A DNA stretch of 64,000 nt from Epiperipatus broadwayi (GCA_028023455.1 JAQFVV010000009.1:13826001-13890000), one strand, 5' to 3'; numbered from the stretch's first letter, positions 3,846 through 37,137 are shown. Notes: a model not told the origin generated them from the sequence alone. Translations and numbers: made by a program.

Positions 3846-3904
3846 ATAATCAGCAATAGACGTATTTCATGCTAAACCAGCATTCATCAGTTGGTCCAGA
3901 TTAT
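3846..3904 (-). ncRNA. Type I hammerhead ribozyme, family A (core intact)
   Basis: Minus strand: ataatc tgg accaa CTGATGA atgctggtttagcat GAAA tacgtc TA^ttgct gattat. The cleaved nucleotide is 3857. Confidence 0.85.
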
Positions 3905-4311
3905 CATCTCACACACATATATAATCAGTGCTCAGTTTATATTAAGATAGCAAATCCTCACACTTTAATGAATAGGCTTCAATCTACTACAACCACCAAC
4001 TTTTCAGCCATCCATATCATTGGAAATCTGATGATGGAAAGTCAAATCCCATGCTGATGCCAACATTATTGCCATGCCCATGTTGATGTGAAGTCACTCT
4101 GCCCCTTCATGTATAGGACTTTATTCATTTAAATAATATAGAAGAGGAATGGGTAGGACACGAGTTTCATATGTAAATATTTGAAAACCAGGCACTCTTC
4201 ACAAACCCGGAGCTTAATTGTAAATATATAAGGATTTTAACTCAGACTTTCAAGCACCCACACTATCTTATACAACTGATATACATGACCACATACATGT
4301 AGAAAAGATAA

Positions 4312-4370
4312 ATAATCACCAATATATGTATTTCATGCTAAAACAGCATTCAACAGTTGGTCCAGATTAT
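4312..4370 (-). ncRNA. Type I hammerhead ribozyme, family A (A6U core change)
   Basis: Minus strand: ataatc tgg accaa CTGTTGA atgctgttttagcat GAAA tacata TA^ttggt gattat. Cleavage position 4323. Confidence 0.8.
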
Positions 4371-4561
4371 TATCTCACACACACACATATATAATCAGTG
4401 CTCAGGTTATATTAGAATAACAAATCCTTACACTTTCATGGACATTCATGTCATGATATGGATGACTGAAAAGTTGGAGGTTGGAATAGATTGAAGCCTG
4501 TTCATTAAAGTGTGAGGATTTGCTATCTTAATATAAACTGAGCACTGATTATAATCTAGAC

Positions 4562-5096
4562 CAGTGTTCTTCAACCCTTGGTCCGCGGCCCTGTGCTGGG
4601 CTGCGGAACTTTTCTGCAGGTCCGCGTGCTAGACGGGCAGTAAAAAGTTTGTAATAATAAATAATAAGAGTTTAAACTTTTAATTAATATAACCAATTTT
4701 TATTTATTTTTTTATCTCATTTTTACCCCATTAAAAAAAAAAAGAAAACAGAACGAAAACAAAATCTAATCAATCATTCATAAATTATTTTGTTTTTCTA
4801 GTTATCACAGATGTTTATGGGGGGGGGGGGGTAGAATTAAATTTTTTATTACTTTTCTAAAAAAAATTTTAAAAAAAGTTTTTTATTATATAAACTCCAT
4901 ATATATATATATAAAACTTTATCTTATATATTTAACATTGTTGTTTTGATCAGTTATAACAATTATGCTTATCTTTAAGAAAATTTATCTATAGACTTTT
5001 GCCGGTCTGAGAAATCTTATCCTTATTTTTGCTGGTCTGTGGAACCTTATCCTTCTTTTTACCGGTCCGCAGGTGTGAAAAGGTCGAAGACCACTG
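4562..5096. mobile_element. Non-autonomous hAT (Buster/Charlie-type) MITE
   Basis: 15-bp TIRs CAGTGTTCTTCAACC / GGTCGAAGACCACTG (13/15), perfect 8-bp TSD ATCTAGAC (4554-4561, 5097-5104), subterminal ~30-bp repeats at the right end. Confidence 0.95.
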
Positions 5097-5152
5097 ATCT
5101 AGACCAACTGATGAATGCTGGTTTAGCATGAAATACATATATTGGTGATTAT
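5097..5152 (+). ncRNA. Type I hammerhead ribozyme, family A (core intact; outer stem I disrupted by the hAT insertion)
   Basis: atctagaccaa CTGATGA(5108-5114) atgctggtttagcat GAAA(5130-5133) tacata TA^ttggt gattat. Confidence 0.85.
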
Positions 5153-5425
5153 TTATCTTTTCTACATGTATGTGGTCATGTATATTAGTTGTATGAGATA
5201 GTGTGGATAGTTGGTGTGTGCTTGAAAATCTGAGTTTAAATCGCCTATATAGATCAGCATAAAAGCAAGATAAATGAACAAATGGAGACCAAGTGAAAAT
5301 GATCAAGTTATAATTGTCTTATTTTGGCTATCTAAATAAAATTACTCATTTCATTAAAAAAAAATCTATAATAAATTACTAAACATCACATGATCACCAT
5401 TTCTTATGCTTGCTTATAACTGTTA

Positions 5426-5530
5426 TTAAAACAGGCAAAACTTTCCATACAGTAGTGTCTTTTGACATCCATTGATTACTCTGGCTTGCATTAAGTGGCA
5501 CTACTGTATGGAGACTTTTGCCTGTTTTAA
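5426..5530. mobile_element. Small foldback/MITE with TTAA ends (Kolobok-like termini)
   Basis: 32-bp inverted arms (30/32) 5426-5457 and 5499-5530 with a 41-nt spacer. Ends read TTAA|AACAGGC...GCCTGTT|TTAA. Confidence 0.5.
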
Positions 5531-6279
5531 AATATATAATACTCAATAACAATAGTAATAGAAGTGGATGAGTGATAATGAGATAAATGGATTCAGTCAT
5601 GTGCTACTAAAAAGTCTAAAAAAAAGGTATAATAGATTATACTGAATAAAGACTATAGACAGTCTCTAATAATAATAAATTATTTGGTGAGTAATATTAA
5701 AAAAGGAATAGACAATTTTTCCTCAATAGTGAAAGTTTAATAATAGAAAAAAAAATTTATTTTAGTTGATTTATAATTGTTTCAAGAATTAGATATATTT
5801 TCTTAACTAAAGTATGATATTCGAGCATTTTCATAATTTGTCAAATTTATTAAATTATATTTGTCTTTTTTTCATCAATTATGTACTGTATTCTGTTTAA
5901 AGTTTTTAATTTATCTTTTGGATTCGAAAAAAATGTTTGCCATTAGGTGACAGTGGATTCTTTGACTTCTTTTTTAGCCTTTAAGAAACTGAGCAGAGGA
6001 AATGTCTAATATTCATTCCATATATTCTTCTTGTTGCAATTATTATTACTATGTTATTATAGGTGGGCTGCTTATCAATACACATAAGATAGCATGGTGA
6101 GTTTTTAAAAAATTACCTCTGAATTTAAGATCAAGAAAATATCATGAACTTTTTTCTTTGGTGCCTAATAGTTTTTAACTGGAACATTAATTAGATTTTG
6201 TTGAATACATAATGTATGAATGCTAATCCTCTTTTATATTCACAATTACAAAAATAATATATGGCTTTCATTTATTAGA

Positions 6280-8230
6280 GGCAGTAAAGGAAGCAGTCAT
6301 GTCAGCAGTTGCTGATTGAAGGTGATGCGAAGAATCTTCTGTTATGAGTCAATGTATGTTTGATCCATCCAAAGAGCATTTTAAAATTTATCACAAAAAA
6401 TTGTAATGCTAAAATTGAAAAACAATTGAAACATGAATAAATTTGGTTATGGAGATAGTGGTGAAAGAACATGGAGACTTTTGGAATTTGCAAAAAAAGA
6501 AAAACTGTGTATTATTAATTTCTTATGGAAAAAAAATCTAAAATTAAAAGAGAAATGGAAGCATACAAATAAAGATATAGCAAAATTGGATTATATTTTG
6601 ATTATCAGAAGATAAGTATTGTATTTTAATATTATAATTTGTTTAATAGATTCAACAGAGATTGTGGTTAATAATTCTTGACATGTAAAGCACATGATAA
6701 TACAAAGTTATATTTAAAAAGACTGTAGAGTTGATATCCCTAATCTTCAGAAATATTCCAATAAATATAAACTATAACTTGAAAATTACTGTACTTTAAA
6801 AAGTAAAAGTCTGAAAATAGGTCTGACTTGAATGGGATAACTGATACTCTACTAAGAAATGCTATATAGATAGCTAATATATGTATTTTTGATGGATGTG
6901 AGGCAATATATGATAAAAATAAAAAAATATTTTAAAATAATTTATTTAAAGAATTAAATATCTGAAATTCTATAAAATCATATAAAAAGAGTTAGTGAAG
7001 TGAGCCTTAAAAATATAAAATAACATCTTGCTATTGGATTTTTCTTTTCAGTATTATTAAAAAGAAAAAGAAGATCATGAAGCATGTGAAAGAATTCTGC
7101 AAAATTTATATAGTAATAAATTTTTAAAAAAACAAGAAAGCTAAATAGCCACTACAATTGAATATCTTTTAAAATTCCTTAATACTATATTATAAATAAG
7201 GAAATAAAACATGCAATTAAATTAGGAAGGATGAAAAAATTCTAAGAAATAATAAGATTTTTAAAGATATTTTAAAAGAAGTAGGTAGATAAATAGATGG
7301 TAATGTTATAAATAATAAAGAAATGATTGGAAGAAAGAAATAATATATTAAAAGTTATAGATCTATCAGATTTATATGTGACTTTTACTAAGACCATTAC
7401 AACTCATCTATAAAGAACCCTGAATCAGATCAAAAGAATAATGAATATGAATTGCTATAATCTTTCAGATTTATAGACCATACTTTATTCTAAAAACATT
7501 CTGAAATTGATTAATGCTTTGAAACATTAAAACATATGTTTAGATAAACTTAAAAATTTATAGCCAGTTGATTTTATTTCTAAAAATTTAAACCATTTTA
7601 TATAAAATATTTTATAGATTAAACTAAACGAGGTAAAAAATGAATACTTCAGATTTTGTATTTGACATGATTATTTTTAAAATAATGATTTAGAACTTTA
7701 GGAAGTGTTACAAAAACTATAATGAAAGTAAAAATATAGGACTCAAAAAAGTGAAAAGTTTAATGGAAGAGAAAATAAAACTTGATAGCAATCACTTACA
7801 TAAAATTAACAACTATAGATATCTTGATCAAATTATTAATATGGATAGAGAAATAGTGGATAAAATTAATTATAAAATTTATATTGAATGAGATTTTTTT
7901 GGTGGAAATAAAGTAATATTTAAAGAAAATATGTCTATGTCCTTGAAAAGAAACTTTAAATAATTATGTTTTATATATTGCTTATTGTAGAATAAAAAAT
8001 TTAAACTCTTGTTAGAAAAGTAATATAAAAACTTCAAACCATACAATAAAGTATGGAGTGATATATTCTGAGAGCAACAAGAAGGAACTATAAGTGAAAC
8101 AAGTGGTGAAAAACAGATAGTACTAATACTGTTGAAAAAATTGAAAGCCTAAAATAGAGTTGTGTTGGATATGTCACTAAAAGAGGTGGCAATGTTTGGT
8201 CAATTGAAATCTTGCACTGGATACCAAAAA
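6280..8230 (+). mobile_element. Decayed RTE-clade LINE (APE endonuclease plus RT remnants)
   Basis: KFGYGDSGERTWRLLEFAKKEKLCIINF...KLDYIL (APE) at 6433-6615. RT C-terminal remnants (LKRNF.., W..HV-like) run to about 8220, with many stops and frameshifts. Confidence 0.8.
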
Positions 8231-8805
8231 AATCTATAAAAATTGTATAGGTGACATGGATAGATAAGAAAATTTGCTGAAGTGATATAGAGAAGAAAGT
8301 CTATGGATCAGAGAAATTGGAATAAAAATGAAAAAGTCTTTACCCTGCAAATGATTGATAATAATTAAAAATAATGATAAGTGATGATTTTTCTTAAATA
8401 TTGTTACTATTGTCACTATGTTGAGACTAGCCATCTTGTAATTTGTAAATTGTTTTCAATGAACTCATTTATATAGGAAGAAATATCTTTCTGATAAAAA
8501 TAATTTGCAAAACCATATATTTATTCATATTTAGAGATACAATAAATGCTACTTGCTAGAACACATTAAAAATTCAATGTGTGAATTATAATGGATATTA
8601 AAAAAATAATCTTTTAAATGTATCCACATGGACATTGTTGAGCATATCTCTTGGATCCAGAATAGTAATGTCTCAAAATGTAAGTTAGAAAAACATTAAT
8701 GATTCGTTTGAGAGCTAATAATAAATTGTAATGTGCTATCATTATAGAAGATTTCACATTAGCAAACATTTTTACAGAAAATTTGCAAAATAAAGTGATC
8801 TAGTG

Positions 8806-10590
8806 CAGTGATCTTCAACCCTTGGTCTGCGGACCGGTCTGCAGAAGTTTTCTGATGGTCCATGCTAGACTGGCAGGAAAGTTTGTAATAACAAAATAAT
8901 AAGATTTTAAACTTTTAATTAATATAAACAATTTTTATTTATTTTTTCATTGCAATTGCTTAAATAAAATTAATTATAAATCAAAATTTTATTTAAATTA
9001 TTAGATAATACTATAATTACTAAATAATAATCAAAGGAATTTATCTGAAAATCTCAATCTTTAAAAAACAAAGCGTCAATCTCATGATAATTGTACCACT
9101 CCTTATACTCAATTTCTATACCTAGTAGGCATTTCTGTATTGCGTCAGCTCATTTATTGGTCACATATAGGTTTTTTTTTATTGCATTTGTATCATCTTT
9201 TTATTTTGTGTGTGACATTTCTTTTTGAAATTGTAAACTTCACAAAATGGAGACAGATCATTGATGATGATTTCTTTTCAACATAAATCTACTCTTTTTT
9301 TTATTTTTAGCAAAATGACATCTTTATAATGATTGTTTTATTTCTATGTGACACTTTACCAAAACAATTTTCCTTCTGTTTTTATTTTTTAATAGGTAAA
9401 AATGAAATTAAAATAACCACCAGATTCAAAATTTTAAAAAAAAGAGAACATTTTTTTATTATACAAACTCCATAAATATATAACTTCATCTTGTATATTT
9501 AACATTAAATGCAGATATTACATTTTTCATAATCATTGTCATGTAATTACACTAGCTGTGATATTTCCCAACATTCAGGTGAATAACATTTTATTCTTGC
9601 ATGTTTTAACAATGAATTAATAAACATAGCAATGCAGGCACATTAATGAAAATGTATTGTTTTCTGTAGCAGTATGACTGGGCAATTCAAGAAAGAGTGT
9701 TCAGCATGTGAAGGTAAGCAACACTATTACAATACACAGTAACTAGTGTGTTGTTTTGGTCAGTGCTATGTGTGTGTGTATTCACATATACATGCAATAA
9801 TAATGTAACTATTATAAATGAATACAAGTATGTGTGTGTATGCTTATTAACAGATACACGCAATAATAATGTAACTATGACAAATATTCAAGTATGCGTG
9901 TGTATGCTAAAAGCATCACAGAAACGATTAAGGTTGGTCAGAGATAACCAGACTGACCACTTTGTACCTCGTGTCATGGGATGACCAATGGAAATAGAGA
10001 GTGTTACATCCGGTACGGTGGGAACAAACAAGGTCAGACTTGCTAGGTGAAGTTGAGGGATGGATGCGTTTTCCTGAGTGCACAGACACTACTTCACTTT
10101 CAGCTCATCTCGCGGAGAGGTCTACCTCCGAACGTACTAAGGTAGACCTAGGGACCATTACAGGTCGTATAGACTTTAATATTGTTTATTGTAAGCCTGC
10201 GGGCCTTTAAGACTAGAGTTGTATAATAATGTGTTAGTCAGTTTACCTTTGTAATAATTGTATTATATATTAATCCTTGTATATGTATTTATGTATATAA
10301 ACCTATTAACTCCACTACCGTGTTCGTGTGTTTAATTATATAATTACTTGTCGCTGTTGAGTGCGATAAATCTCACTCGAACCTCGACCATATATATATG
10401 CGACTAGTACTGGATATTGCAGTCAGTTATAACAATTATGCTCATCTAAGGGTAATCAGTTTAAATCTTTAAGAAAATTTATCTGTAGACTTCTACCAGT
10501 CTGTGAAATCTTATCCTTATTTTTGTTGGTCCACAAAATCTTATCCTTGTTTTTGCTGGTCTGCAAGTGTGAAAAGGTTGAAGATCACTT
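8806..10590. mobile_element. Longer copy of the same hAT MITE family, carrying a solo LTR
   Basis: TIRs CAGTGATCTTCAACC / GGTTGAAGATCACTT (14/15, terminal base mutated), perfect TSD ATCTAGTG (8798-8805, 10591-10598). Both ends align with 4562-5096. Confidence 0.92.
9542..10421. mobile_element. Solo LTR (880 bp), probably Ty3/Gypsy
   Basis: TGTAAT...ATTGCA termini with 4-bp TSD GTCA (9538-9541, 10422-10425). Absent from the hAT copy at 4562. Higher GC, retained CpGs, and an internal ~62-bp tandem pair at about 9770-9905. Confidence 0.85.
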
Positions 10591-13500: not shown

Positions 13501-13649
13501 TTATAAAGTTTTCATTTCTAATATAAAATTAAGTTTTTTATCAACTTAAATCAGTTTTTTTCTTATTACAAAATTTTACTGTTCTTAAGATATTTCTGAT
13601 TTTTCTTTTTTTTTCTATTTTAAATATGATATGCAAATTATATGACAGA

Positions 13650-17260: not shown

Positions 17261-18334
17261 TCATCATCATCATCATCATTATCAACCATTATCAATCCAC
17301 TGCAGGATGAAGGTCTCTCCAAGTTTAATCCATCTTCTCCGATCTTTAGCTTCTCTTCTCCACATCACCCCTACACATTTTCTTATTTCATCCATCCATC
17401 TTACATGTGGTCTCCTTCTGGGTCTTTTACAATCTCTTGGAATTCAGTTTAAAATTTCAATTGTCCATCTATTATCATCTCTTCTAGCAATATGTCCAGC
17501 CCAACTCCACTTCAATCTTTTAATTTTTTCAATGAGGTCAGTAACACCTGTTTGTTCTCTTACCCATACATTGTGTTTTCGATCTCTTCTTGTTACTCCC
17601 AACATACATCTCTCCATACTTCTTTGAGTGGTCTGAAGTCTCTGTATTGATCTTCTATTAAGTGTCCAAGTCTCAGATCCATAAGTAAGAACTGGTAAAA
17701 CACATTTGTTAAAAACCTTTCTTTTCAAACACATAGGCATATTTCCTTTTAATATCAAGTTATTTCTACCAAAAGCACTCCAACCAAGTTTAATTCTATG
17801 ATTAATTTCCTCTATTATGTTTCCATCTGTATTAATAATCTGACCAAGGTATTTGTAACTCTTAACTTCTTCTAATTCATCATAATCAATCTTTATTTTC
17901 ATATTTGGAGCAAATCGATTAAACATTACTTTAGTCTTTTTAACATTTATCTTTAGTCCTACTTTCTTACTTTCATCTGATAACTCCTGCAACATTTCCT
18001 GCAGCTCGGAAGCATTATTTGCAAAAACAACTACATCATCTGCGAAATCTAAATGACTTAAATAATCTCCATTTACTTTCACTCCTTTAGTTTCCCATTT
18101 TAATCCACAAAATACCTCTTGCAGCACTGCTGTAAAAAGTTTTGGAGATATGGAGTCACCTTGTCTTACACCTTTCTCAATGTTGACTTTCCCAGTATCA
18201 TTATGTAATCTAATTGTTGCTGTTGCATTTTTATAAATATTCTTTAAAATATGACAATATCCTGGATCTATACCTTGATGATCCAATGCTTTAATCACTG
18301 AAGAAATGTTTATAGAATCAAATGCCTTTTCATA
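17261..18334 (-). pseudogene. Young 5'-truncated RTE-clade LINE; RT C-terminal half with one nonsense codon
   Basis: YEKAFDS, GVRQGDSISPKLF, LDFADD, YKYLG, VLTYGSETW and KWSWAGHIARR motifs. TGA at 17446-17444 replaces the expected Trp, and the frame continues to ...FILQWIDNG* (17282). (TGA)n tail at 17261-17280. Confidence 0.97.
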
Positions 18335-18339
18335 AGATT

Positions 18340-19714: not shown

Positions 19715-21305
19715 TGATGGTAGACCAAAAGCTTACATAAACAAAGAGACAAATTATGTAATAATAATTTATTTACAAAGTATAATCATTTATTGATGTG
19801 CAATTTATTTCTTTAACAAAGTTATTTTGCCTTTATACATCATAATATTAATATATTCATAGAAAATATAACAATTTTGTCAAGTCTTTAACCCTGACTT
19901 CATTAAACTTAAATATAATTCTATATGTGTATGAATTCATAAATATAACATTTCTTTGAATTGCATGTCTCCTAGTAATTATGCATAAATATGCTCTATA
20001 TGGGATAGACATCAATACTATCTTTATCACAAAAAGCATAAGGAATGATCTTTTAGATCCTAATCCTAAACATAATTGCTTATATAATAATAACTATAAA
20101 ATGATATCCTTTTGATCCTAACCCTAACTGAATAAACCTTCTACAATAATTACAAGGAGTGGCTTTTTGGTTCTAAATCTAATTGAATACAACTACAATT
20201 TATACAGAAATGACTCATTCTGAGATTTATCCCTAACTCATTAAACTGATAGGAATGTATTCTCTCAAATGGATGTAAACATCTGTAAACTATTAAATAT
20301 TGAACAAACAACTGGGCATATATAATTTCATCTACATAAAGTCCAATTTTCAGTAATCAAATATAAGTTTAACTACGAACAAATGACTAATGGAAATAAT
20401 TATATTGTTAATTACCATTTTTTGAGACTTAGGTTACACGATCATCAGTATTTTTTTTACCTTTTTCTCTTATTAATAACTTATATATAATTCATAAGCT
20501 TAGTATAAATATGTGATTATATACTAATTATTTCTTCTTCTTCTTTTTCTATCTTTTCAAATGTATTATCAAATTTATAAAGTCAAAAACTTCACATAAA
20601 TATATCGGAGAGACTTTCTTTTCAAAAAATTTATTGATATACATTATATAAACTACATAAATAAAATATAAATATCCAACGTTTCGTCCATTTTTTTAAA
20701 AAAAAAAAATTGAACTGAAGAGAAATTACTACGAATTCATTAATTTTTTTTTTTTGACAGTTTCCCTCAAAATAATATCTAGATACAACCATTATTTACA
20801 AATTTGGATTTATCTTTTCGTTATATATGTGTTCAAGTATATCAGTGCTATGAGAAAGAGTGAAGAGTGATGGGTCGTGTGAAAGTCTGTGCTCATATAC
20901 TCTGTATATTAAATATGACTGTAATTATAAGACTCGTAAAAAACAAAATAATTGTCATTTAATTCTTTCTAACAAATATTAAAAGTCCATTTAGGGTGAT
21001 AATATCAGCTTGTAATGTCCAGCTGTCTTTTAAATAAGCCTATTTTTTCATTTCAGCCGGAGTTATTCAAATATCATTCAAAAGTTTTCCATGCCAGATC
21101 TAGATAACTGTTAGTAGTGGCCTTCACAAAGCATAAATGGATGTCCTGTGGGATTTGAATGAAGTAATATATTAGTCTGATCAAAAGAAAATAAAAACTT
21201 TTTATATTAAGATTTAGTTTGCTCTTGAATCTTGTTTCAGTTCTTTTTCTTTTTTGTAGAAAAAAAAAAAAAACAAATTTGATATCATTTTGCTTAGAAT
21301 AGAGA
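19715..21305. repeat. Copy 2 of the ~1.45-kb direct repeat, with two extra insertions (about 20530-20690 and 20808-20930)
   Basis: Aligns with 15680-17130 apart from these inserts. Confidence 0.85.
20808..20905 (+). repeat. Diverged 3' fragment of family A (no hammerhead)
   Basis: ttatcttttc...gtatatcagt..tatgaga.agagtg.agagt.atgggt..gtgaaagtctg resembles 5153-5240. Confidence 0.55.
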
Positions 21306-21973
21306 ATGAAAGAAATGTTGACTTCCCAAGTAAACAAGTAATACGTCTAAATGCACTAAAATGCAGGCAATTGTGAAGCTAAGTATTAATTGGCTGAACA
21401 CTTTCAAGAAGTATTATCTTCTCATAATCAAAGTAAATGGGTTGTATTAGCACAGAAGAATATGTATGTGACAAATATTTAAACATAGGCAAAATGGATT
21501 AGAAGGAAGCATGCTTTTCCAAGAATGCTTTCTCTCTGTTTATAGTAAAGCTTTTGTTAGCCATAATCCATATGTTTGAACCATCTTCTGCTTTCATTGC
21601 ATACATAGAATTCCATGACTCTAAACATAAAATCAAAGGATGACTTATAGCTAACAATACCTATATTATAAACCAAAGGAACCCCCAATCACCCCAGAAT
21701 TGGATATTATACAGTTTTCTATTCCTGCTCTTATCTCCAGTCTTTCTATCGAAACTTTTAATAATCTTAAAAACAAAATAAATACTAAAAAAACAGTTTT
21801 TCTTATTTTAACTTGTTTCTCATTAGTATTTATTATTGAAATACAAATATAATGTATATAATTAACCTAGATGTAATTAAAAGGGATTTGAACCCAAACT
21901 TTCAAGCTCCCAATAGTCATCCACTCTATCCAATATAACTGATACATATGACCACATATATGTGAAAAAGTAA

Positions 21974-22032
21974 ATGATCTCCAATAATTGTATTTTATGC
22001 TGAACCAGCACTCATCAGTTGGTTCAGATTAT
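21974..22032 (-). ncRNA. Hammerhead, family A (G12A, likely inactive)
   Basis: Minus strand: ataatctgaaccaa CTGATGA gtgctggttcagcat AAAA tacaat TA ttggagatcat. Confidence 0.7.
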
Positions 22033-22058
22033 ATATATATGTGTGTGTGTGGAAAATG

Positions 22059-22117
22059 ATAATTTGGACCAACTGATGAGTGCTGGTTCAGCATGAAATA
22101 CACATATTGGAAACTAT
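22059..22117 (+). ncRNA. Hammerhead, family A (core intact, stem III weakened)
   Basis: ataatttggaccaa CTGATGA(22073-22079) gtgctggttcagcat GAAA(22095-22098) tacaca TA^ttgg. Confidence 0.85.
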
Positions 22118-23914
22118 TTATCTTTTTCAGAGGTATGTTATCATGTGTATAGGTTATATTGGACAGAGTGGAAGACTGTAGGGATCTTGACAGTCTGGGT
22201 TCAAATCCCCTTTAAAAATTATTATTGTAAAGACTTTTAATCATTTTTAACAACCTCAGATCTATTCCTCTATTTTCAAAATTATAATTTATTTCTGTCC
22301 CCGTATTATATATTTTTAATATATAAAAATGTTACAGGATATTATTTTACAGTTGTTTTTGTCCTCTTTTGATTATTTTTGTATATATATTTAACTATTA
22401 TAATTAATTTAAATTTAATAAGAAAATTGTTATATTTGTCAATGTTAAAAAAGGTATATATCTGTGTGTATATATTGTAATATTCAGAAGAAAAATAATA
22501 ATTTTTGTGAGGATTTTAATTAGATTTACTATTTGAAAATAAAAAGTTTATTTTTTCTTTAAATAAATTTACAAATTCCAAAATGTTATGAGATCTAATG
22601 AAAATAAAACAAAACAAAATGTGTAAAGGTAACTTAAAAATTATAAAATTTACTTTGTAAAATAATCAGAACTAGACATTAATTTTAAAAAGAGAGAGAG
22701 AAAAAAAGAAAACTGAAATGTAAATAATCATATAAAATTATTGTCTAAAATTATTTAATTTTGTAAAATTTCAATCTAATCAAAGATTAAAATAATTTTG
22801 TAAATTATTTAACCGAGGGATTGTATTGTTTTTACTGTAAGATAGTCACCTGATTAGATAATTAATGCTAGAATTAATGTTATAATTTTTAAAAAAGATT
22901 AATTAATTAGAAAAGATTAAAACTGATTAATGATATGGGTGAGCTCAGACAATAGTTTGTCAAGGTATACAAGCTAATAAATTCTTATTAGTTCATCATT
23001 ATTATTACTGAAGTTCAAGAAGATTACTCAACTGAGTTATTGAAATTATTCAACATAATTGAAAGTTATTCATGTTATCCTGTTGCTGTTGAACATTGCC
23101 GTGCAGTCTCTTTCATCTTGAACATCATTTTGTTCTCCATCAATGTATAAACATTTATGTAGATGCCCTAACATCACCACACCATGCAAGACTCACAAAA
23201 GGGTGTTCATTTAGTTTTTCATCACCAGTTCCTATACATTCAATAGTCTGAGATGTGAAAAAAAAAATCCTTGACTTGCAATTGCTGAGACATCTGTCTG
23301 TCATTATCGAAGACTACTGTTGAATATGGCCATTAAGATATTTGCTGCCCCAGAAAGAATAAACTACAGACCACTAAAGAAATCAAAAAACCTGTTCAAG
23401 AATACCATCAACAAACTCTAGAAACTATCAAGAAAACAGGGGTGATCACTGCAGAAAAACTATAGAAACACCTAGGTTAATGTAAAAAAGATAATTCAAA
23501 GTCTAGACTTAAATGAAATACAGGTGTAAGATTTTATTTTCTTTGTAAACTTTTTTGTAATTCGAAATGATAAAACTTTTACTACCTAATTTAAATTGGA
23601 CTTAACTATACTGAATAACTTTGTAATTAGTTTAATTTAATTTTATTCTTATTATTGTTATAATGTTATTTGTAAATAACTATGTTGTTTTACTTGTTAA
23701 TTTGGTCTAAATTCTCTCTCTCTTTCTGTATCTAAGTATATATCATTAATTAAGATAAAATTTGTTATTTATATTGTTTTGTCTTTTAAAATATGCATTA
23801 TCTGATAGTCTAAGTTAGGGAAAATTCTTGTTTATTTGAGCTAGCTGTGGAATCAACTGCTGGGAGTATTTAAAATCTTCTCTTGTTTAATATGCAAGTT
23901 AATTCTGGATGGCA

Positions 23915-26310: not shown

Positions 26311-26390
26311 CGGTAGTCACGGATAATTCAACCGATGACGTATTACACCTTCCGGTAGACATCGGCGATTTTTGCTTGACAACGTTGTCA
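26311..26390. promoter_or_regulatory. CpG-dense patch, candidate housekeeping-type promoter
   Basis: 8 CpGs in 80 bp in a CpG-poor background. Contains TGACGT (CRE-like), CTTCCGG (ETS-like) and the 14-bp palindrome TGACAACGTTGTCA (26377-26390). Confidence 0.4.
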
Positions 26391-28670
26391 TTTTTCTTGT
26401 TGTTGACAATAATTTGATAAAATATCTTGATATTTTTATAATAATGTTTTAAAAGACAATTATCTATTTGAACAGAGAAACGTAACTAAAGTTTTTAATT
26501 AGTCCACAGCGATATTAAAATATTTTTATTTTCATCCTATTATCATCAAGAACTTCCAGAATTTTGATCTCTCTCCAGAATTAACAGTTGATCAGAAAGA
26601 TACAAACAAAATCTTTTTTTAAATATTTTACATATATAGAGTTAAGATTTATAACTGTACATGTGTATGTGTCTGTTAGTCACAACATTTATACCATAAG
26701 TTTGTCTATAACATATTTCATGTGTACTATTTGATACTAATGTTTACTTGAGAGATACCACCATCTTTGGTGACAATTTTGCTGTGTTTTTTAATTTTTT
26801 ATTTGTGCATTTTAGCATGTTTATAATGAATATATTTCTTAGATATACATGATCATTGCTGCAATTGTTTTGACTATGAACTTTATATTTTTATATTTCT
26901 TTATTTCTAGACTGCAACTAAAAATAAACAAAAATTTATTTATTTTATTATATAAATATGATGAAGACAAATTTATAGTATTTTAGTATGACCCTGAATA
27001 AATAAATGGTTTTCATGATATGTACAATAAGATTGAATGAATAAAATCACATTTTTAAAATAGATATTTTGATAAAATGTGGGCTTTTCTAATATTTTTT
27101 GATATAGTTATAGGAAATGTTTTGGAATCTTAAGTATACTCTCCCAGTATGAATTTGAATATCTGCATTAGAAGCAATTTATTCTATTCCAGAGTCATCT
27201 ATTATAAGTTTGACTGTCAGTAGGCAATAAATGAAAGTATCCATTGATTTCTCAAACTTTCAATAAATGATTTTATAGTAGAACAGATTAGTGCTTTTAA
27301 TATAAGTAGGGCATTGTTTTATGACAGTTATCACAAGTCTAAATTAAATTTGAAATAAAAATTGAGACAAGATTATAAAGTTATAGTTGCATTTTGTAGG
27401 TTGAACACAATTCTAGGTAAAACTAAGACATAAAGAAATCATTTTAAAAAAGGTTTTTCGGGAAAATTATCCAGTTATGTTAAGTCTTCTGATTAAAATT
27501 TTATTACAGATTCAAATATGTAATAAGTCTCTATAGGTAATGTAATATCAGTTACGCAAAAATATACATAATCATGTTACAGGTTTTAATGGATTTAAAT
27601 ATGAATATTGTATAAAAGATATATAAATTCTTGTTTGATATAGTTAACAAAAATTTGAGACCAGAAATCTATCATAATCTAATTTTTTTAGTCAAATATA
27701 AGAGCAGAGAGAAATGATCCAAGATAAAGGCTTGATAATTTGGTTTCTGGACATATTAATTTAGCATGTCCATGGAAATGGTATTAGTTAATTGGTAAAG
27801 ATGTAATTGACAAACAGCATCAGGTATAAGAGACTATAATAACAACTGTTCTTTAAGAACTCCTTTCACAGCCTTTTATTTGGCATACAACTTAATTCTA
27901 TCATAGAACAAGATTGACAAAAAAAATATAAAGGAGTTTTGTTTTCTCATTTCAGAACCTATATTGTAGTTACAATTGATGTAGTTACAATAGAACATCT
28001 CTATTTTTTTACAATGTGATGAACATTCTCCATGAGTACTAAATCTATTAACTCTTTCAATCAAGTAAAACAATCGTCTATCAGCTGGCAATTGAGTAAA
28101 AAAGTTCCATCATTTATTCTCATCTCACAATACCTTTTTTGCAAAGTTATTCAACATGTTTGTTATAAAAATGAATCAATAGTTGAATAAAATAATTTAT
28201 TGATAAAATTAATAAAAAAGATAGCATATATTATCTTCATCTTTATTAAATAACTAAGGGGAAATGTCTATGCAATATCTATGAATATTCAAAGGTATTA
28301 TGTTCAATAACACAATTTAACAAATAAAAGTGTGAATAAAAGGAATCATATTGTCAAAACTTTAATATATATTGGCTACATTTATTACTTATTAGCTATG
28401 GTTAAAAATTTAATTTTTGGTGAATTTTATTGACTCAAATCCTTTTGGTCATTGAACTTCATCAAAGCAAAAAATTTCAAATCTATTATACTGTGATCAA
28501 ATTTTAATTCACTAATATCTGTAATCATTTGAAACAGGCACCACTCCTCACAAACCTGGAGCTTAATTGTAAATCTAGGGGATTTGAACTCAGACTTTCA
28601 AGCACCCACCAACTATCCACACTATCTCATACAATTGATATACATGATCACACACATGTAGAAAATATAA

Positions 28671-28729
28671 ATAATCACAAATATACCTATTTCATGTTAA
28701 ACCAGCACTCATCAGTTGGTCCAGATTAT
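28671..28729 (-). ncRNA. Hammerhead, family A (core intact)
   Basis: Minus strand: ataatctggaccaa CTGATGA gtgctggtttaacat GAAA taggta TA^tttgt gattat. Confidence 0.85.
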
Positions 28730-28879
28730 CATCTTCCACACATATATATAATCAGTTTTCAGTTTATATTAAGATAGCAAATCTTCACTTTTCAACGGAC
28801 TGAGAACTGATTATATATGTGTAGCAAATCTTCACTTTTCAACGGACTGAGAACTGATTATATATGTGTGTGGGAGATG

Positions 28880-28938
28880 ATAATCTGGACCAACTGTTGA
28901 GTGCTGGTTTAACATGAAATACGTATATTGGTGATTAT
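28880..28938 (+). ncRNA. Hammerhead, family A (perfect stems I and III, A6U core change)
   Basis: ataatc tgg accaa CTGTTGA gtgctggtttaacat GAAA tacgta TA^ttggt gattat. Confidence 0.85.
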
Positions 28939-31900
28939 TTATCTTTTCTATATGTGTGTGGTCATATATATCAGTTGTATGCAATAGTGTGGATAGTTGG
29001 TGGATGCTTAAAAATTTGAGTTCAAATCTCCTATATTTTAATATCTATAATATAAATTACTTTACCCTTTGAAAATTGTTTATACTTTTTGCATAAACTA
29101 CCTTCTATAATATATAAGAATTTATTAGAAAACATGAATCTTAATTTTAAAGTCAATTTCTAACCAGAAAAATTAAGAAAACTATCAACACTTTGTTTTC
29201 CAAATGTTAAAATGTTTACATCAGAATCATGCTATCAGACTCACATTTAACTTAAATGAATTAATAGATCTTGTGCATTCTATTACTCTATTGCAGAAAT
29301 ACATATTATAAATTTGAATAATTCATGAAAACTACTATCTAGTGTTTATTGTTATACTTACAATTGATATCTCAGGAATAGAATGATGAAATGAAAAACT
29401 GCTTATAATGCTGATGTTGAATGTAGACTGTAAGATTCATATGATACATTCCTGATATACACTAGGAATACAAAACCTTTCAATAACTTTGATAGAAAGG
29501 ATTTGCAAATCCTATAGTTAATCTAAAGATCTATAGAATAAATTTGATTTTACACTTTCAGCCAACACATTTCTCTTTATACTAATGCTAAAAGCTATTT
29601 TAAAAATTCAAAATGGCCACTGATGGAGACTTTTCTGGATGATCTCAAATATATGCTTATTATAATTTTATGTAAATTCTAAACATCCACTAACTTTTCT
29701 TTTAGTTCAACATATTAAGTCAACAATTTTTGATACATTTATTTTATAATGACAAAATAAATACTTCATCCTGTTTATACTCATAAATTCTTGAATATTT
29801 TTTGCTGGAGTTTTTTCAAATTTATGTAATTAAATCATTGCTATCAATTCGTATTAAAATGTAAATTAATGGTATTGCTTTTATGTTCAATGTTAAACTT
29901 AAAATAACTATTCCAGGTGATAGATACTTAAATGACTTTTTCATATGAAAGTTAATTATGTAAAACTAATAAGTAAATTTTCAATCAAGAAAACTTCCTG
30001 CTACTTTGAAGTTTATAATGCTGGATTATCAAAATCATGTACTTTTTCTAATACAAAGTCTTTTCTTTTTTTATATATGTTAACATCTTCATTGTCTTTC
30101 TATTTATTACTTCAAATATGTTAATTAAGCATTGGAAGTGAATAAGCTGGCTGAAATCTATAGACCTGAGATCCAGAATCCATTTCTTTAATACTCACCA
30201 AACAATGCAGGCTTCCTATAATAGATGTAGTTTGTAGTTGCAGCATGCTATAGATTACAAATGATGAGTTAAGAGAAATTCTATTAGTTCATATGACCTT
30301 TTGTAAGTATTATGGCATTAAATATTATGGCATTCAAATCATGTTTGTATTATAAAAATTAGCTAAATCTAATAAAATATAAAAGCAAATTGTAGACATG
30401 ATTTCTATCTATTTCATTATTCATTTATTCTACCAATATTATAGTCTTCTTTTTTTAATCATGATTTGCATTGACTGAAATTAAGAACAACTATAAATCA
30501 ACTTATCAGTCAACATTGGACGACTGCCTAAAATGTTTCCATACTTGCTTGCTTCTGTAAATTCTTTATCTTATTCGTGAATGTGATCCTAAGTGATGGG
30601 GAAAGCACTAACCACCACAAATGTGCCTTTTCATAGTACTATATTAAAGTGCAATATACAGTAAATATATGTGTATTAGGTTAACATTATAAACGTAACT
30701 ATTAAAAAATGATTCAAATATTAACTAATGTTGCTCGAACTTTTTATGAACTCCCGAGCATTATTCCATTCGATTATATATATATTTGTTTAATTTACTG
30801 AATTAAACCTACATGATTTTAAAAAGTAGCATTCAGTTTGAAATTAGATTTCGTGATTTAATTAAGGAAAAATAAACATATGCACATCATTATACCCGCA
30901 GGAAATTTATCGGCTATCACTTCATATTCAATTAGACACCGCCCTTTTAAAAATAATTGCCATCTTTTAATAAATAAATAGACATCAGACATATGATAAT
31001 CTTTAACAGAAGTTTAGTAGCAATAAAGTCTTATTTTTTATTTATTTTGTATGTAAGGAAAATTTACATAACAATGAAAGAAATTATTTAACTGCTGTTA
31101 AGTATTTTTGTTAGTCAATTGAATAAATATTCCAAATATTCTACAACATTTATCACTTTATTTAGAATATTATCATATTAAACGTGAAATAAATTTTACT
31201 ACGAAATGGTGTAATGACCTATTTTTTTAGTACAATAATACCAGTTTAAGTTTTTTTTTTTTTTAATCGCCTTTTTAATTTTCGAGTGGTCATACTTCAT
31301 TACAATCACTGAAAGTGATAATCATCATATATTTGCATGTGTCATATATATAAACTACGTATGTTTTTTTTCTCTATACACACACTATATCTTTTGAACA
31401 TCCTATGTTTTGCGCTAAAATTTGTTTTTCATAATATATACGCGTGTGAAGAATATTGTATACATGCTAACATTATTTTTTTTTATCTAATGATGTAGTG
31501 AATATCTTGATTAAATGAACCTGCCCAGTTTATCAAAACAAGTAAATTCGTCTTGTTTTATGATATGCCTTCAGTGAACATGAAAATAAACATTTATTGA
31601 TATGATAAATAAATAAGTGACAAATTGCTCATTCAAGAGCTCATTGTTTTTCTTACGTACCAGATATAAGATGTGGATTCCCAAAGAAATTCAATCTGAT
31701 CACATTAGATTATAAGAGAAAATATTTCACAGTAGAAAATGCTATTAATCAATAGGTGTTATTAATTAGCATCATATATTCAGAAATAATTGGCAATATA
31801 AATAGATGTACATTGATAAGAGGACAACCGCAAATACAGTTAAAGTATCACATTTACTTCTTTATGGGGAAAAAATACAGTTAAGCAGCACAGGGAAACT

Positions 31901-32449
31901 CACTAATGATGTAAATAAGCTTGTCTTATTACATTGTACACACTAAATAAAAACATATATTGTGTTAAGTTTCTTTTGATTTTATGTAATATTTATGAGC
32001 TAAATAAATGGTTAAAGCATGTACTATTTAATTAATGCACAACAATATTGATGATGACAATGAGATCTTAGATTTGAGGTTGGAAATAAAAATTACAAAA
32101 AATAATTTGATGTTCAAGCAGAAACTGTGATATCTTATCTAAAGTTGTCAGACTAAGGATATATTGTAACTATATATGAAGTGCAATAGAATAGTAAATA
32201 TTTATTTAAAGTCTTTGAAAGCATGAGAATCTGATCATGACTTAAATATGGGTTGCTTAAATTTGATCCAGAATGCTTAAAAAGCTAGCAAATTTTTATT
32301 AACTTTAATGAAATAAAAGTTAAATTAAAGTTGGTAATACTGGCGAGTTGTGTGTGAGCCTGCAACCTATTAGATCTTGCAAACAACATTAGCTCATCAA
32401 ATTAACTTTTGATAAAGCCATAGAATTGTGAAAATCATTTAAACTCAAA

Positions 32450-35230
32450 ACTGATTATAATTCCAAAAGACATAATCAAGAGATTAATGAATAAGAAAAC
32501 AGTTAACTAGGCATTTGAGGTTTAAACACTGGTTTTGATTAGCAATTTGAAGATGTTTCTAAATGAGATTCTGAAATTTTAAACTACTAATATACCATCT
32601 CAACTAATAGAAAATCCATTTCTACAGCCAGTCAATACTGTCAGCAATTGGAAATCTAACTATGTTTTATATAGCAAGTAAACTAGAACAAAAATATGCT
32701 AAAATGCTCTTTTTCTGAAATTTAGAAAGCCTTGTGTGTAATGTTTTCTCTTTCACTGTTTCTATAAAATAAGGCTGCTGTCTTTTCCATAGAATAATTA
32801 AAAGCTGATTTTCTTTTTATAATCATTGGTACAAATAATAGACTTTGGCCAAAAGTTATTGGAGATAATGTTATTGGTACTGTAAATTTAAATGGCTATT
32901 ATTAATGAATTTTTGCACAACATGTAGATTGACTATCAAAAATACTTTGTTGAGATAGAAAAACTGCTATAAAAACATAAATGCATCCAATCTAAAAAAA
33001 AAAAAAGCTTTTAATATATTATATTATAATTGGAAGTCAGAAGAAAAAAAGTGTTCATATTAAGTGAACTTTTATAAGCAAGGATTGTTGGACAAATCGT
33101 AGATGCTCCACAATTAAAATGATAGATACTTTAAAAGTAGATCTTATACTAATCATATTGTCAAGAAAATTGATGATTATTTTTTAGAAGCATCTATTAT
33201 ATATAGTACATTTCAACAATTATTTGACACTAAAATTGCTAATTTGAACCTCTAGAATTGTCATATTACTGAAGCATGGAATTCTCTTAAGGGGTGTATT
33301 ATGGATACAAGTAAATCTATTCTTGTTTTTACTAAAATCAATCATGACTGGTTTTTTGACATTAGTCTTATTACTAGTAATTTAATTGGAAGGATATATG
33401 GTATTTTCTGGTTTGTGGAAAAATAAATGGGATCTGAGTGTAAAAGTTTAATGAGTAATCTGAAGGTTTGTGGATTAAAATTGCAAAGAAGATAAACATT
33501 CATTGATCATAGTCACTCTAGATCTTTGCTGATATTCTGAAAGCAATATATTAGAATTTAGAAATGATATCACAACCCTATTAAATCTAGTAATGATACT
33601 ATCTTATATAATGACAATGATATTTTGAACAGGTGAAAGGAGTATTTGTATTATCTTTTGAAAAATTTGAGATGCTCATTTTTAACTTTAGAGATAGATA
33701 CCCAATTTAGTGAAGTCAAAACAGCTCTTTGTAGTCTTATAAAAGAAAAGGCTGCAAGTCCTGATGAGATACCTGAGGAAGTGATATGTTAGCTTCAAAA
33801 ATATTAGAAATTTTTAGGAATATATAGACACAAAATTATGCTGCCTAGTCTTAAGAATGCCTTTATTGTTCCAATTTTTAATAATAAAGAGAATAGGCAA
33901 AATTGCAGTAGTTATCATTGAATATCATTATTACCCACTATAGCAAAGGTAAGAATTTTCATGAATAGGCTTTCAGTCAGAGATGAAAACTCGGTTTAGT
34001 TTTAGAAAATCAAAACACACTATAGATATGGTTTTTGTTATCTCACATTTGTAAAAAAAAAAATGTCAAAAACAGACTATGATTTCTTTATTGATTTAAT
34101 CAAGGGATTTGATTTTGTCAATTAAACAGATTTACAGCAATTATTTGAAATAGTGCCTATCAAAATTTATTCATATTATATAGCTTTTACCTAATAAAAT
34201 GAGAGGAAGTGATATTATTATAAATCGAAGATCTGAGGCATTTGAAATGAAAATGATGTTGAACAAGGATGTTTCTTTGTCCCAACATTGTTTTCAGTTT
34301 TTATGACAGTTCTCTTTGGAATTGTTTATAAATTGCTTGACAAAACAGGGATTGAAATGTATATAGGGTTGATAGTGAAATTTTTAATTTGAGTCAAAAT
34401 GAAAAACAAGAACTCCTACTTATTGTACTCTGGATTTATAGTTTGTTGGTGGTGGTGCTACTTTTTCCAGATCAAAAGCTGATTTACAGCATATTCTTAA
34501 TGTTTGAATGTAATATTTGAAGGTTTGGATTTAATAATAAATATTCAAAAAAAAACTCTTTATTAATCAGTAATAAAAAAAAAATCAGCAACTTTTAGCT
34601 TGGATGATTATGAACTTACAAATGCAAACTAATTTAAATGCCTTTGTAATATTATAAATAGAAAGATGGAGTTAGATATTGAGGTGCAATATAAACTTCA
34701 ATATGCTGCTTTTAACATACTAAATGATAGGGATAACTACTATAACTAAATCTGTTGCATATAGAACTGATATTTTATCTATTTATAGTATGGAAATGAG
34801 ACTTGGACACTCTATTAATGTATTATAAAAATATTAGAATTCATTTACAGATGCTTCATTAAATTTTAAAAATACAATAGCAAAATCATAAAACCAATCA
34901 AGGTGTTCTTCAATTTGATGGATGTGATATTATAAAATTTCATTACCATAAAATCACATTTTCATTGAATTGGACAAGTAAAACAAATAAACAATGCAAT
35001 GTTTACTAAAAGATTGTTTTCTAGTTAATTTGAGCATAGCTTTAGTGGAAAAGATAGATATGTTTGCATTACAAGGATTATCTTAATGATATTCTAAAGA
35101 AATGCAATGTCAATTGTTTCCATTGGAAAGATGTGGCAGAGACTAGAATATATTGGAGATCGACAATTGGTTTTGCTGTTGAAGTATTTCAGACATAAAA
35201 TTTTTAAAAATCAGCATCACCAAATATCAA
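32450..35230 (+). mobile_element. Near full-length decayed RTE (BovB-like) LINE
   Basis: APE remnants (about 32480-32930), KAASPDEIPEE (33750), NYRGISLLP-like (33900), FIDL.KGFD (34090), VEQGC (34260) and YGNETWTLY (34790), all frameshifted. Confidence 0.8.
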
Positions 35231-36966
35231 ACAAATAAAAAATATATATCCGCATGGTCATATATGAGAATATGTCTGAGTTTCAAAGATTGGTTCTTAA
35301 GTTGAAATTGGAATGACCATGCTCTTTTATAAATGGATGCTATATATATAATAAATTATTTATTTATATAGATATATGGAAAATAATAGTAAAAATGTCA
35401 TTAGTGATTATTAAAGTGTTATTACTTTGCTATCTCATTCTATTGTTTGATTTTCTTCTCTTTTTTTGCAAAAAAGAATACATAAACGCACATTTTATGT
35501 ATAGTTTTTTGAAAATATTATTTACAATGGATTTTTTTCCAACTATATGCAATTCATAAGCAAATAAATAAAATATTTTAATGTGAATTTTTTTTTTTAC
35601 TTTAGCATATACATACAACCTTCAAGATTTAAAAAAAAACTATATCGCGCGCAGTGATAATTATAAGTGTCACACATATTTATAAACAATGTTTAAGAAA
35701 AATTCAATTTTATTAATCCAATATTTATTTGACAAAGATGAATATAGTCCCAAATTAAAAATATTAACAGCAGAGTTATCATATAATCAGAATTTATAAC
35801 AAAATGTAATCTGAGCTATCCCTCCCATCTGAAAAAAAAAAAAACACTTTTAATTTATCTTGACAATATGTATATCAATTTCTAGACATAAAATCTTCTG
35901 CCCCAAAATAATAATAAAATATTAACTATAACAAATATTTTTATATTACTTTTGTGGATTTTTTAAACTTAGAAATTGCATAATTGTAATCATCATAATC
36001 GATCCTGACGATATATCATTTTCAATACTAATTATTATGAATTAATTTAATTGTTCTATCTAAACAACTTTATAATACAGTTTTTAATTCTTTTGAGCAC
36101 TGCTAATTTTTGTACTGCTGATTCAATACAAAACTTGATCAAAATAAATATAAGATTATGTTCACATTTGGAATCACTCCTTGAATTGCTTCAAAAAGAA
36201 TGAAACACGCTTTTGTATAACAGCGTGCCAATTCTTCATTCAAAAATATTAATATCGACATCAATTATTAAGTTGAAAAAATAGTTATCAAACTCTTTTT
36301 CGATATTTTTCTTATTTACATTTAATAAAAATAGCAAAATAATTTATAATATATTATTATGGCTCAACATTTATTAATTTCTGTTAATTCATTGTAAATT
36401 CTGGCAACTGGATCCGGTCAGAAAACACTAAGCATGTTATTGAAAATGAACTATGAAGGTGTTTTATATAATCAAAGAAAAGAAAGTGCTTCCAAATGAT
36501 ATTTCTATTCATTCAATCTGTAGAGCTGATTTTTTTAATTTTATGTAGTAGAGAATTGTTCCAAGGATTGTGAGACTGCTTTACCAGTGGTGCACTAATC
36601 TGGATAGGACACCTTTCATAATACTTCCTCTCTACATTTTACATTTTTTTTAAACTTGCATTTGAATTAATATATTAAAGATATCAGTACTTTATTTTCT
36701 TCTTTTATTTAACCTCTATGAAATTCCATTTAATTCTGGGTCCAGGTCATTTAAAAAGATTTTGTCTTAAATACTTAATCACCACCAAAACAAGTGAATA
36801 TTTAAAAATATATATATGTATGGGATACAGATTTTGTCATAAGACATTTTCTTATCTGATTGCTAATACTTTCTATTTACTATTACTTTTTAAAACATTT
36901 CCAATTCATTTTTGTAATTTTTGTAAGAATTTATGTTTGTTTTTTTTAAAAAAAAGAATAATTTTT

Positions 36967-37137
36967 AAATATTTCATGCTGATGAGTTCTGGTTCAGCAT
37001 AAAATATGTATAATGAAGATCAGTTATCTTTTTCACAAGTGGGTGGTCATGAGTATTGGTTGTATGAAATAGAGTGGATAGCGGAAGGGAGCTTGAAAGT
37101 ATGTGTTCAAATCCCTTATAATTACATTTAAACTCCA
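36967..37137 (+). mobile_element. Family A partial copy (subfamily B) with a G12A hammerhead remnant
   Basis: CTGATGA(36979-36985) gttctggttcagcat AAAA tatgta TA, then the family A 3' body to gttcaaatccc and part of the tail. The 5' junction is a short inverted piece. Confidence 0.8.

Follow-up and report, generated by a model that had tools for sequence, protein, structure and literature searches.

In a 64,000-nt stretch of the Epiperipatus broadwayi genome (GCA_028023455.1, JAQFVV010000009.1:13826001-13890000; hereafter the window, with a G+C content of 26%), eight copies of a hammerhead motif belong to a repeat that we call family A. We propose, with a probability of about 0.8, that family A is a non-coding, non-autonomous, hammerhead-bearing retroelement of about 478 nt, of the kind known as animal non-long-terminal-repeat (non-LTR) retrozymes, that is, a non-autonomous Penelope-like element (PLE). 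The proposal draws on a consensus with the complete core of a type I hammerhead ribozyme, on the anatomy of the insertions, and on an abundance of tens of thousands of copies in a genome assembly of 5.6 Gb. Self-cleavage, action as a dimer and circular RNA would be expected for family A from published related elements.

The hammerhead motif

Aligned copies reproduced the consensus given in a preliminary description of the window: 5' to 3', AUAAUC, a UGG bulge, ACCAA, CUGAUGA, a 6-bp stem II with a GUU loop, GAAA, UACGUA, UA^UUGGU, and GAUUAU. In standard hammerhead numbering (C3-A9, G12-A14, A15.1/U16.1, and position 17 at the cleavage site), this consensus comprises C3-A9 and G12-A14, with the palindrome AUACGUAU closed by A15.1 and U16.1 and with A17 (H, not G) where cleavage is predicted. 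It agrees throughout with the conserved type I core (C3 U4 G5 A6 N7 G8 A9, G12 A13 A14, A15.1-U16.1, H17). Stem I has 5+6 bp, ACCAA/UUGGU plus AUAAUC/GAUUAU, separated by the UGG bulge, and its open helix gives the type I topology. Helix III consists only of the 8-nt palindrome AUACGUAU, which cannot form a hairpin and can pair only between two motifs, with a duplex energy of -6.5 kcal/mol. The stems are in register, with 92.5% of cells paired versus 25-48% when the partner was slid, and stems I and II appeared as predicted in the monomer minimum-energy fold of a natural intact copy. A strict descriptor requiring the palindrome identified 16 such motifs in 278 kb of real sequence versus none in 30 shuffles of the window. 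Judged by its letters, the consensus has all that a type I hammerhead with a dimer-type palindromic helix III requires at the sequence level, and the earlier label of "ribozyme-bearing" is supported to that extent.

A covariance model was built from 59 genomic copies, which were drawn from the older G and A subfamilies (named by the base at position 10.1). It recovered exactly the eight window copies previously described, at the same places, with scores of 43-100 bits. Likewise, the 34-nt part of the consensus that begins at CUGAUGA and ends at the cleavage site matched the window 6 times when up to 3 mismatches were tolerated, and a 23-nt piece of the consensus matched it 7 times, versus 0 in 100 shuffles for each. 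A ninth candidate from the covariance model (20361-20423, E 0.1) was rejected because stem II is missing. The complete core was retained in 4 of the 8 window copies and 36 of the 59 sampled copies. Among the 59 sampled copies, the central pair of the palindrome was C-G in 11, U.G in 21, and unpaired in 24, the central CpG having decayed in most.

The window copies with intact core nucleotides are those at 3846, 5097, 22059, and 28671, as the preliminary description had stated. Only 5097 and 22059 passed a stricter hammerhead descriptor that demands a contiguous stem I and gives about 0.2 matches per shuffled window. Copy 3846 has one stem I mismatch (UUGCU) and a broken palindrome (UACGUC), each of the three stems is mismatched in copy 28671, and copy 22059 combines an intact core and stems I and II with a decayed palindrome (UACACA). 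Of the remainder, the core reads CUGUUGA in copies 4325 and 28883, AAAA replaces GAAA in copy 21992 (G12 to A), and copy 36965 is 5' truncated, starting at CUGAUGA (36979) without the 5' strand of stem I, and also has AAAA for GAAA. No window copy (0/8) has all core nucleotides and the three helices intact together, two failing only in the CpG-decayed palindrome; therefore, none is likely to be active. The window copies are old and belong to minority subfamilies. The family had also been called dispersed. The eight copies are indeed present, but they are grouped as four insertion complexes of 3, 2, 2, and 1 copies rather than standing as free ribozymes. The peptide MLNQHSSVG, noted earlier as an antisense reading, occurs 5 times and is in every case the antisense translation of stem II, core, and stem I.

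The unit and its insertions

Self-comparison of the window and 29 further loci (L-numbered loci are stretches taken from the same genome) defined a unit of about 478 nt, which in the window lies on the minus strand, starting at 4167 and ending at about 3696. Its hammerhead spans unit positions 264-322 and has its predicted cleavage site near 311/312. The largest open reading frame (ORF) of the unit is 62 aa long and antisense, in keeping with its description as non-coding. Copies have 5' ends at many different points of the unit, whereas the 3' ends fall into two classes, at about 420 and about 471, and neither poly(A) nor a microsatellite tail was found in the family A copies compared from the window and the fetched loci. 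Units arranged head to tail join position 478 to position 1 (the 478/1 junction).

Most insertions comprise more than one copy, and many are inverted composites. We found 24 abutting head-to-head pairs of 5'-truncated arms, with an inner junction that differs each time, and at least 11 of the 24 are flanked by direct repeats (target duplications) of 11-21 bp. Each composite is therefore one insertion event, with two arms that overlap in content. One arm typically ends at about 420 and the other at about 471, which leaves a tail of about 50 bp at one end only. Among the first 100 exact matches listed for the 34-nt core pattern described below, on contig C1 (first 17.6 Mb), there were 12 head-to-head (-,+) pairs within 800 bp and 0 (+,-) pairs; same-strand neighbors spaced 473-490 bp apart, of which there were 6, were rarer than these inverted pairs. 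Variable 5' truncation, fixed 3' ends, and target duplications of 11-21 bp bear out the earlier assignment to retroelements and show that the element inserts through reverse transcription.

PLE insertions are described as highly 5' truncated, often forming partial tandems that act as pseudo-LTRs, often having an inverted 5'-truncated copy that adjoins the 5' end, and carrying a 30-40-bp tail, often at one end only (Craig et al., PMC8557442). Family A shows all four of these features, and the partial tandems, inverted 5'-truncated copies, and one-end tail match this description closely enough to uphold the link to PLEs and retrozymes that had been suggested. In the window, the complex at 3696-5251 displays a partial tandem, an adjacent inverted 5'-truncated copy, and a one-end tail; scattered 5' truncation is a feature of the family as a whole. 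The 5'-truncated unit at 4168-4440 lies directly upstream of the full unit at 3696-4167, producing a partial tandem that resembles a pseudo-LTR. The junction between them (..ACATATG/AAACTCG..) is the 478/1 junction, which recurs in tandem copies at other loci, and the predicted cleavage sites of the tandem (4322 and 3856) are 466 nt apart.

Separately, the 5' ends of inverted-pair arms cluster at about unit 97-144 (for example, in L002, L004, L006, L011, L013, L017, and L028). Transcription could start here, or the reverse transcriptase (RT) could tend to stop or turn around at this place.

Abundance and subfamilies

The 34-nt core pattern used for genome-wide counts spans the whole core, stem II, and the palindrome, allowing any base at 10.1, Y at 11.6, and CpG decay on either side. 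It had 37,276 exact matches in the genome and 0 for the reversed control, so that family A is abundant, as first described. Since only 13 of the 59 sampled copies match the pattern exactly, and the sample was taken from older subfamilies, the total is probably of the order of 10^5 copies. Among the 100 matches listed, the base at 10.1 was U in about 79%, G in 17%, A in 3%, and C in 1%. The U form, which mostly retains its CpG, is the main, younger subfamily, and the window copies (G or A at 10.1) belong to older minorities. A second-subfamily query gave about 2,168 candidates in the genome. Every subfamily consensus retains the core, while positions 10.1 and 11.6 and outer stem I differ.

Penelope-like elements and other hammerheads in this genome

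PLE partners were sought through a search for the GIY-YIG endonuclease domain, with a first look yielding 10,243 candidates in the genome; eight 10-kb PLE loci and 12 shorter ones, a small part of these more than 10,000 candidates, were compared by blastn and tblastn. Intact PLE ORFs (RT plus GIY-YIG endonuclease) of 749-901 aa were present, belonging to at least 3 families, 95-99% identical within families and found in tandem and inverted arrangements. These PLEs have a hammerhead of their own, with a U3-A8 core (UUGAAAA), one unpaired base, a 6-bp stem II, GAAA, the palindrome ACGU, and a UU cleavage site, located about 300-400 nt past the stop codon and about 130 nt ahead of the next ORF. 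Its stem II covaries across PLE families (GACUAU/AUAGUC, GAUUGU/ACAAUC, and GACUGU/ACAGUU). Pieces resembling family A near PLEs (L037, L043, and L049) were considered as pseudo-LTRs and rejected, being nested or neighboring insertions.

A further hammerhead, family C, is intact at about 585-632 (+) of L020, with stem I CCUCU/AGGGG, CUGAGGA, a 4-bp stem II, GAAA, the palindrome ACCAUGGU, and a GUC-type site. The family C and PLE hammerheads share the architecture of family A with entirely different helix sequences. A decayed family C copy that has lost G12 lies in the window at 48770-48810.

Insertion complexes and other features of the window

The coordinates of the family A insertions and of the PLE hammerheads are collected in Table 1. 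The arm at 4453-5251 is interrupted by a miniature inverted-repeat transposable element (MITE) of 535 bp (4562-5096), whose terminal inverted repeats start with CAGTGGTCTTCGACC.. and end with ..GGTTGAAGAACACTG, inserted in stem I of the 5097 hammerhead. Because it is flanked by an 8-bp duplication, GTCTAGAT, this MITE is hAT-like. The pair at 21872-22211 belongs to an older subfamily that is about 78% identical to the main one, and the pair at 28523-29040 has the repeat TAATATCT(G/A)T on both flanks.

Table 1. Family A features of the window and hammerheads of Penelope-like elements in other loci
Feature	Position	Strand	Details
Covariance-model match	3838-3912	-	
Covariance-model match	4304-4378	-	
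Covariance-model match	5085-5160	+	
Covariance-model match	21966-22040	-	
Covariance-model match	22051-22125	+	
Covariance-model match	28663-28737	-	
Covariance-model match	28872-28946	+	
Covariance-model match	36956-37031	+	
Insertion complex	3696-5251		Inverted arm, 5'-truncated direct unit, and full unit; flanked by GAT(T/C)AGCATAA; later split by the 535-bp MITE
Target-site duplication, left	3684-3695		GATTAGCATAAG
Full-length unit	3696-4167	-	Hammerhead 3905-3846; predicted cleavage 3857/3856; tail ..GGTTTTCAAATATTT ends at ~3696
5'-truncated unit (unit 198-478)	4168-4440	-	Hammerhead ~4371-4312, CUGUUGA
Inverted 5'-truncated arm	4453-5251	+	Head to head with 4168-4440; unit 148-248 at 4453-4553, unit 267-421 at 5097-5251, MITE between; hammerhead ~5094-5153; ends without tail
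Target-site duplication, right	5252-5263		GATCAGCATAAA; 10/12 positions identical to left
Head-to-head pair, left arm (unit 264-427)	21872-22032	-	Hammerhead ~22032-21974, G12 to A
Head-to-head pair, right arm (unit 245-416)	22038-22211	+	Hammerhead 22059-22118
Head-to-head pair, left arm (unit 207-470, with tail)	28523-28788	-	Hammerhead ~28730-28671
Head-to-head pair, right arm (unit 232-425, no tail)	28846-29040	+	Hammerhead ~28880-28939, CUGUUGA
Solitary 5'-truncated copy	36979-37167	+	Begins inside hammerhead at CUGAUGA
PLE hammerhead	L043 2168, 5303, 8436	+	
PLE hammerhead	L043 311	-	Also in L031, L033-L038, L045-L047, L049, L050

Downstream of the hammerhead, at a distance of 60-100 nt, are a B-box-like word, GAGTTCAAATCC (3766-3753, -), and an A-box-like word, TGGATAGTTGG (3794-3784, -). 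The same words occur at the matching place in other copies, and the short 3'-end class (about 420) falls just past the B-box-like word. Matches to Rfam microRNA-precursor models at 21942-22151, 28730-28879, and 39885-39966 (E down to 1e-10, far under the gathering scores) were rejected as hairpin artifacts. The first two are inverted pairs of the hammerhead element, which score as long hairpins and hence produce such spurious matches, and the third is a TA-rich palindrome.

Remnants of other mobile elements were also seen. A 284-aa ORF at 17444-18298 (-) covers the C-terminal half of RVT_1 (E 1.7e-19), and its C terminus is of the long interspersed element (LINE) type, not of the Penelope type. 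A weak Penelope-like RT remnant at 56108-56398 (-), with 28% identity over 103 aa to an ORF of L048, fits a Penelope-like 3' repeat noted at about 55250-55404. At 53589-53963 (-), a 124-aa ORF with an ISXO2-like / IS1595 DDE transposase domain (E 1.5e-13) is a DNA-transposon fragment.

Discussion

If family A is a PLE-type retrozyme, its life cycle can be outlined from related elements. Two motifs, in a tandem or partial-tandem transcript or in two transcripts, would pair via the palindrome and so form an extended helix III and a double hammerhead. Each motif would then cut after ..GUAUA, giving unit-length RNA with ends held by stem I, which a host tRNA ligase may circularize and which a Penelope-like RT/endonuclease would copy and integrate in trans.

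The insertion ends constrain this outline. In the window and 29 loci, the 3' ends of insertions all fall away from the cleavage site (about 311), which also shows no enrichment of 5' ends. This means that integration does not use linear monomers released by cleavage as its template. An uncleaved transcript and a religated circle are both compatible with the data, and a circle would also account for the partial tandems with the 478/1 junction.

The lack of insertion ends at the cleavage site also counts against the retrozyme interpretation, and several further observations weigh on the same side. No Rfam hammerhead family matched at its gathering score or at E<=10 in the window plus three loci with intact copies, a small search space. 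Rfam Hammerhead_1 (RF00163) and the other Rfam hammerheads share with family A the catalytic core and the three-helix junction, and they likely miss it because these curated models expect a helix III hairpin, which family A does not have. The monomer from cleavage site to cleavage site (466 nt, window) is not unusually stable (z = -0.7), and the dominant young subfamily, with U at 10.1, has a U.U mismatch at the base of helix II. When the 3' regions of three intact PLE families and a further 12 GIY-YIG loci were compared with family A, no sequence similarity was found. The sampled autonomous families carry a U3-A8 core and family A a C3-G8 core, and no helper was found among them. The family is also present in contigs of public runs from four organisms; the kind of these runs is uncertain (RNA was guessed), and they provide no evidence of RNA.

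Measures of constraint were similarly unsupportive. The preliminary description had noted that stem II variants keep pairing, which is true of the letters but does not exceed chance: across the 59 copies there was no within-family covariation, with 92.5% of cells paired versus 92.8% when partners were shuffled. Genome-wide, allowing A at three core Gs added 3,622 matches and allowing it at three non-core Gs added 4,148, a ratio of 0.87 that is statistically distinguishable from 1 but small and that sequence context could explain. Identity to the consensus was 94.3% in the hammerhead versus 93.2-93.3% in the flanks for 46 main-family copies, and 86.8% versus 82-85% for 14 divergent copies; the regional excess, located over the hammerhead's 5' half, is only slight in both sets. 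In the sampled copies, the core carries mutations as other positions do. A lack of excess conservation of the core over its flanks genome-wide had been named beforehand as a refuting outcome; an excess is present but marginal. This fits individual copies that decay near-neutrally, as dead insertions do, and leaves function in source copies unrefuted. What speaks for a role of the motif is found at the level of the source sequences, where the core is retained in each subfamily consensus and the architecture recurs with other helices.

In the run contigs mentioned above, majority letters restore the consensus (UACGUA and UUGGU) at the two positions where copy 3846 deviates. Summed word depth in these contigs was 10-30x higher at 3848-3971 and 4282-4343 than in the rest of the unit. 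This high-depth block comprises the hammerhead with about 65 nt upstream and 40 nt downstream, and more families might share it. Contig depth cannot rank parts of a sequence, however, and we gave the difference no weight.

Under a different explanation, the motif would be catalytically inactive, either as a relic or because its likeness to a hammerhead arose by chance, and the element would spread by other means. The missing Rfam match, the lack of within-family covariation, the near-neutral decay of the core, and the U.U mismatch in the major subfamily are all in its favor, as is the poor in vitro cleavage of PLE mini-hammerheads (PMC4209133). We nevertheless consider this explanation unlikely. 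Thirteen core positions, three helices, and a perfect palindrome within one 60-nt stretch are far beyond chance, each subfamily consensus preserves the core despite variation around it, and the architecture is found again, built from different helices, both in unrelated families and in this genome's PLEs. In addition, the axolotl hammerhead HHR_Amex2 shares the U.U at the helix II base with the main family A subfamily and yet self-cleaves, far more efficiently in dimeric constructs (PMC7229834). Because the motif is complete and recurrent, a non-functional look-alike seems unlikely from the sequences at hand.

Two other explanations concern the mode of transposition. Family A could be a tRNA-derived short interspersed element (SINE), transcribed by RNA polymerase III (Pol III) and moved by a LINE, with inverted pairs arising by twin priming and a hammerhead that is a passenger or functionless. 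Such a passenger has a parallel in the schistosome element Sm-alpha, reportedly described by Ferbeyre et al. in 1998, which is said to be a short non-coding retroposon that, as family A does, combines Pol III-box-like motifs with a type I hammerhead. For the Sm-alpha hammerhead, a stable helix III and activity of the monomer are reported, and the tRNA-like part of Sm-alpha is said to lie at the 5' end. The two box-like words, the resemblance of 5' truncation and 11-21-bp target duplications to LINE-driven insertions, and the LINE-type RT ORF in the window all speak for a SINE. Unlike Sm-alpha, however, family A matches no tRNA model: ARAGORN reported 0 tRNA genes, and the Rfam tRNA model had no match in family A units even at E<=10. 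Moreover, the starts of the boxes are only 28 nt apart, a TTTT run would stop Pol III before a downstream hammerhead, and the copies are without poly(A) or microsatellite tails. Arms of the inverted pairs also overlap extensively, both with the hammerhead, which twin priming on a single RNA cannot yield, and partial tandems and a one-end tail are Penelope-like features (PMC8557442). We therefore regard a SINE origin as quite improbable. More improbable still, to the point of being barely tenable, is a fold-back or MITE-type DNA transposon with the motif present by chance in its terminal inverted repeats. Many copies are indeed inverted repeats flanked by direct repeats and score as long hairpins, but the inner junction is different in each pair, the outer ends are non-equivalent (about 420 versus 471), the flanking repeats vary in length (9-21 bp), copies commonly occur as single arms or as direct tandems of about 475 bp, and they have no associated transposase.

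The interpretation of family A as a PLE-type retrozyme is in keeping with several known systems. The hammerheads of PLE pseudo-LTRs combine a long helix II and a short helix I with a helix III that is either minimal ("min-HHR") or small and palindromic, are expected to act as dimers, and occur on opposite strands 100-700 bp apart (Cervera & de la Pena 2014, PMC4209133). Family A resembles them in its type I topology with open stem I, a helix II of at least 6 bp, and a short palindromic helix III that should act as a dimer, as well as in its high copy number, opposite-strand pairs, and PLE-type insertions. It differs in lying in a 478-nt non-coding unit and not beside an ORF, in its longer stem I (5+6 bp with the UGG bulge), and in its longer palindrome (8 nt). 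Its canonical C3-G8 core also differs from all PLEs sampled in this genome, which have U3-A8 and place an unpaired base ahead of helix II. The satellite 2 hammerhead of newts and salamanders likewise has a weak helix III whose center is palindromic, and it requires a double hammerhead for activity according to the account in PMC4209133, which cites Forster et al. 1988. As presented in that account, the newt motif, with a tetraloop on a stem of 1-2 bp, is found in long satellite arrays, whereas family A has no loop and is found in insertion complexes.

Among animal non-LTR retrozymes, dimer-dependent cleavage has been reported in amphibians together with circularization by RtcB (Cervera & de la Pena 2020, PMC7229834), HHR_Amex2 being one that works better in dimeric constructs. 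Retrozymes have been argued to be non-autonomous PLE derivatives (Li, Clavereau & Pollet 2026, preprint, bioRxiv 10.64898/2026.07.22.740005), and the PLE mobilization proposed for metazoan retrozymes is what we propose for family A. Family A shares with them a short, AT-rich, non-coding repeat, a type I hammerhead, tandem copies, and target duplications of more than 4 bp. In contrast to the 170-400 nt of metazoan non-LTR retrozymes, its unit is 478 nt long, and inverted head-to-head pairs and partial tandems are commoner in the sampled copies than direct tandem neighbors. Sequence links to a PLE pseudo-LTR have been reported for Xenopus retrozymes, whereas none was found for family A in the sampled PLEs.

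Family A thus fits an established class, and knowledge of the class as such is unchanged. A bolder claim can be made only tentatively, and we doubt it more than we favor it: that family A is an uncatalogued, recently active retrozyme of some 10^5 copies whose insertions are direct anatomical evidence for Penelope-like integration of retrozymes. A full-text literature search did not find the stem II/core sequence string. If this claim is true, the C3-G8 hammerhead and a sequence unlike that of the sampled U3-A8 PLEs would imply either trans-mobilization without shared termini or an unseen helper. Since insertion ends are never at the cleavage site, the ribozyme would then act upstream of integration, for example, by providing circles for rolling-circle copying, and would not define the template ends.

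In sum, family A probably makes up a measurable share of the 5.6-Gb genome of E. broadwayi, and its masking and annotation are warranted. With tens of thousands of copies, clean junctions with target duplications, and coexisting PLEs that carry a different hammerhead, it should be useful material for studying the roles of hammerheads in PLEs and retrozymes, including which enzyme moves them, which template is used, and whether the ribozyme is needed.

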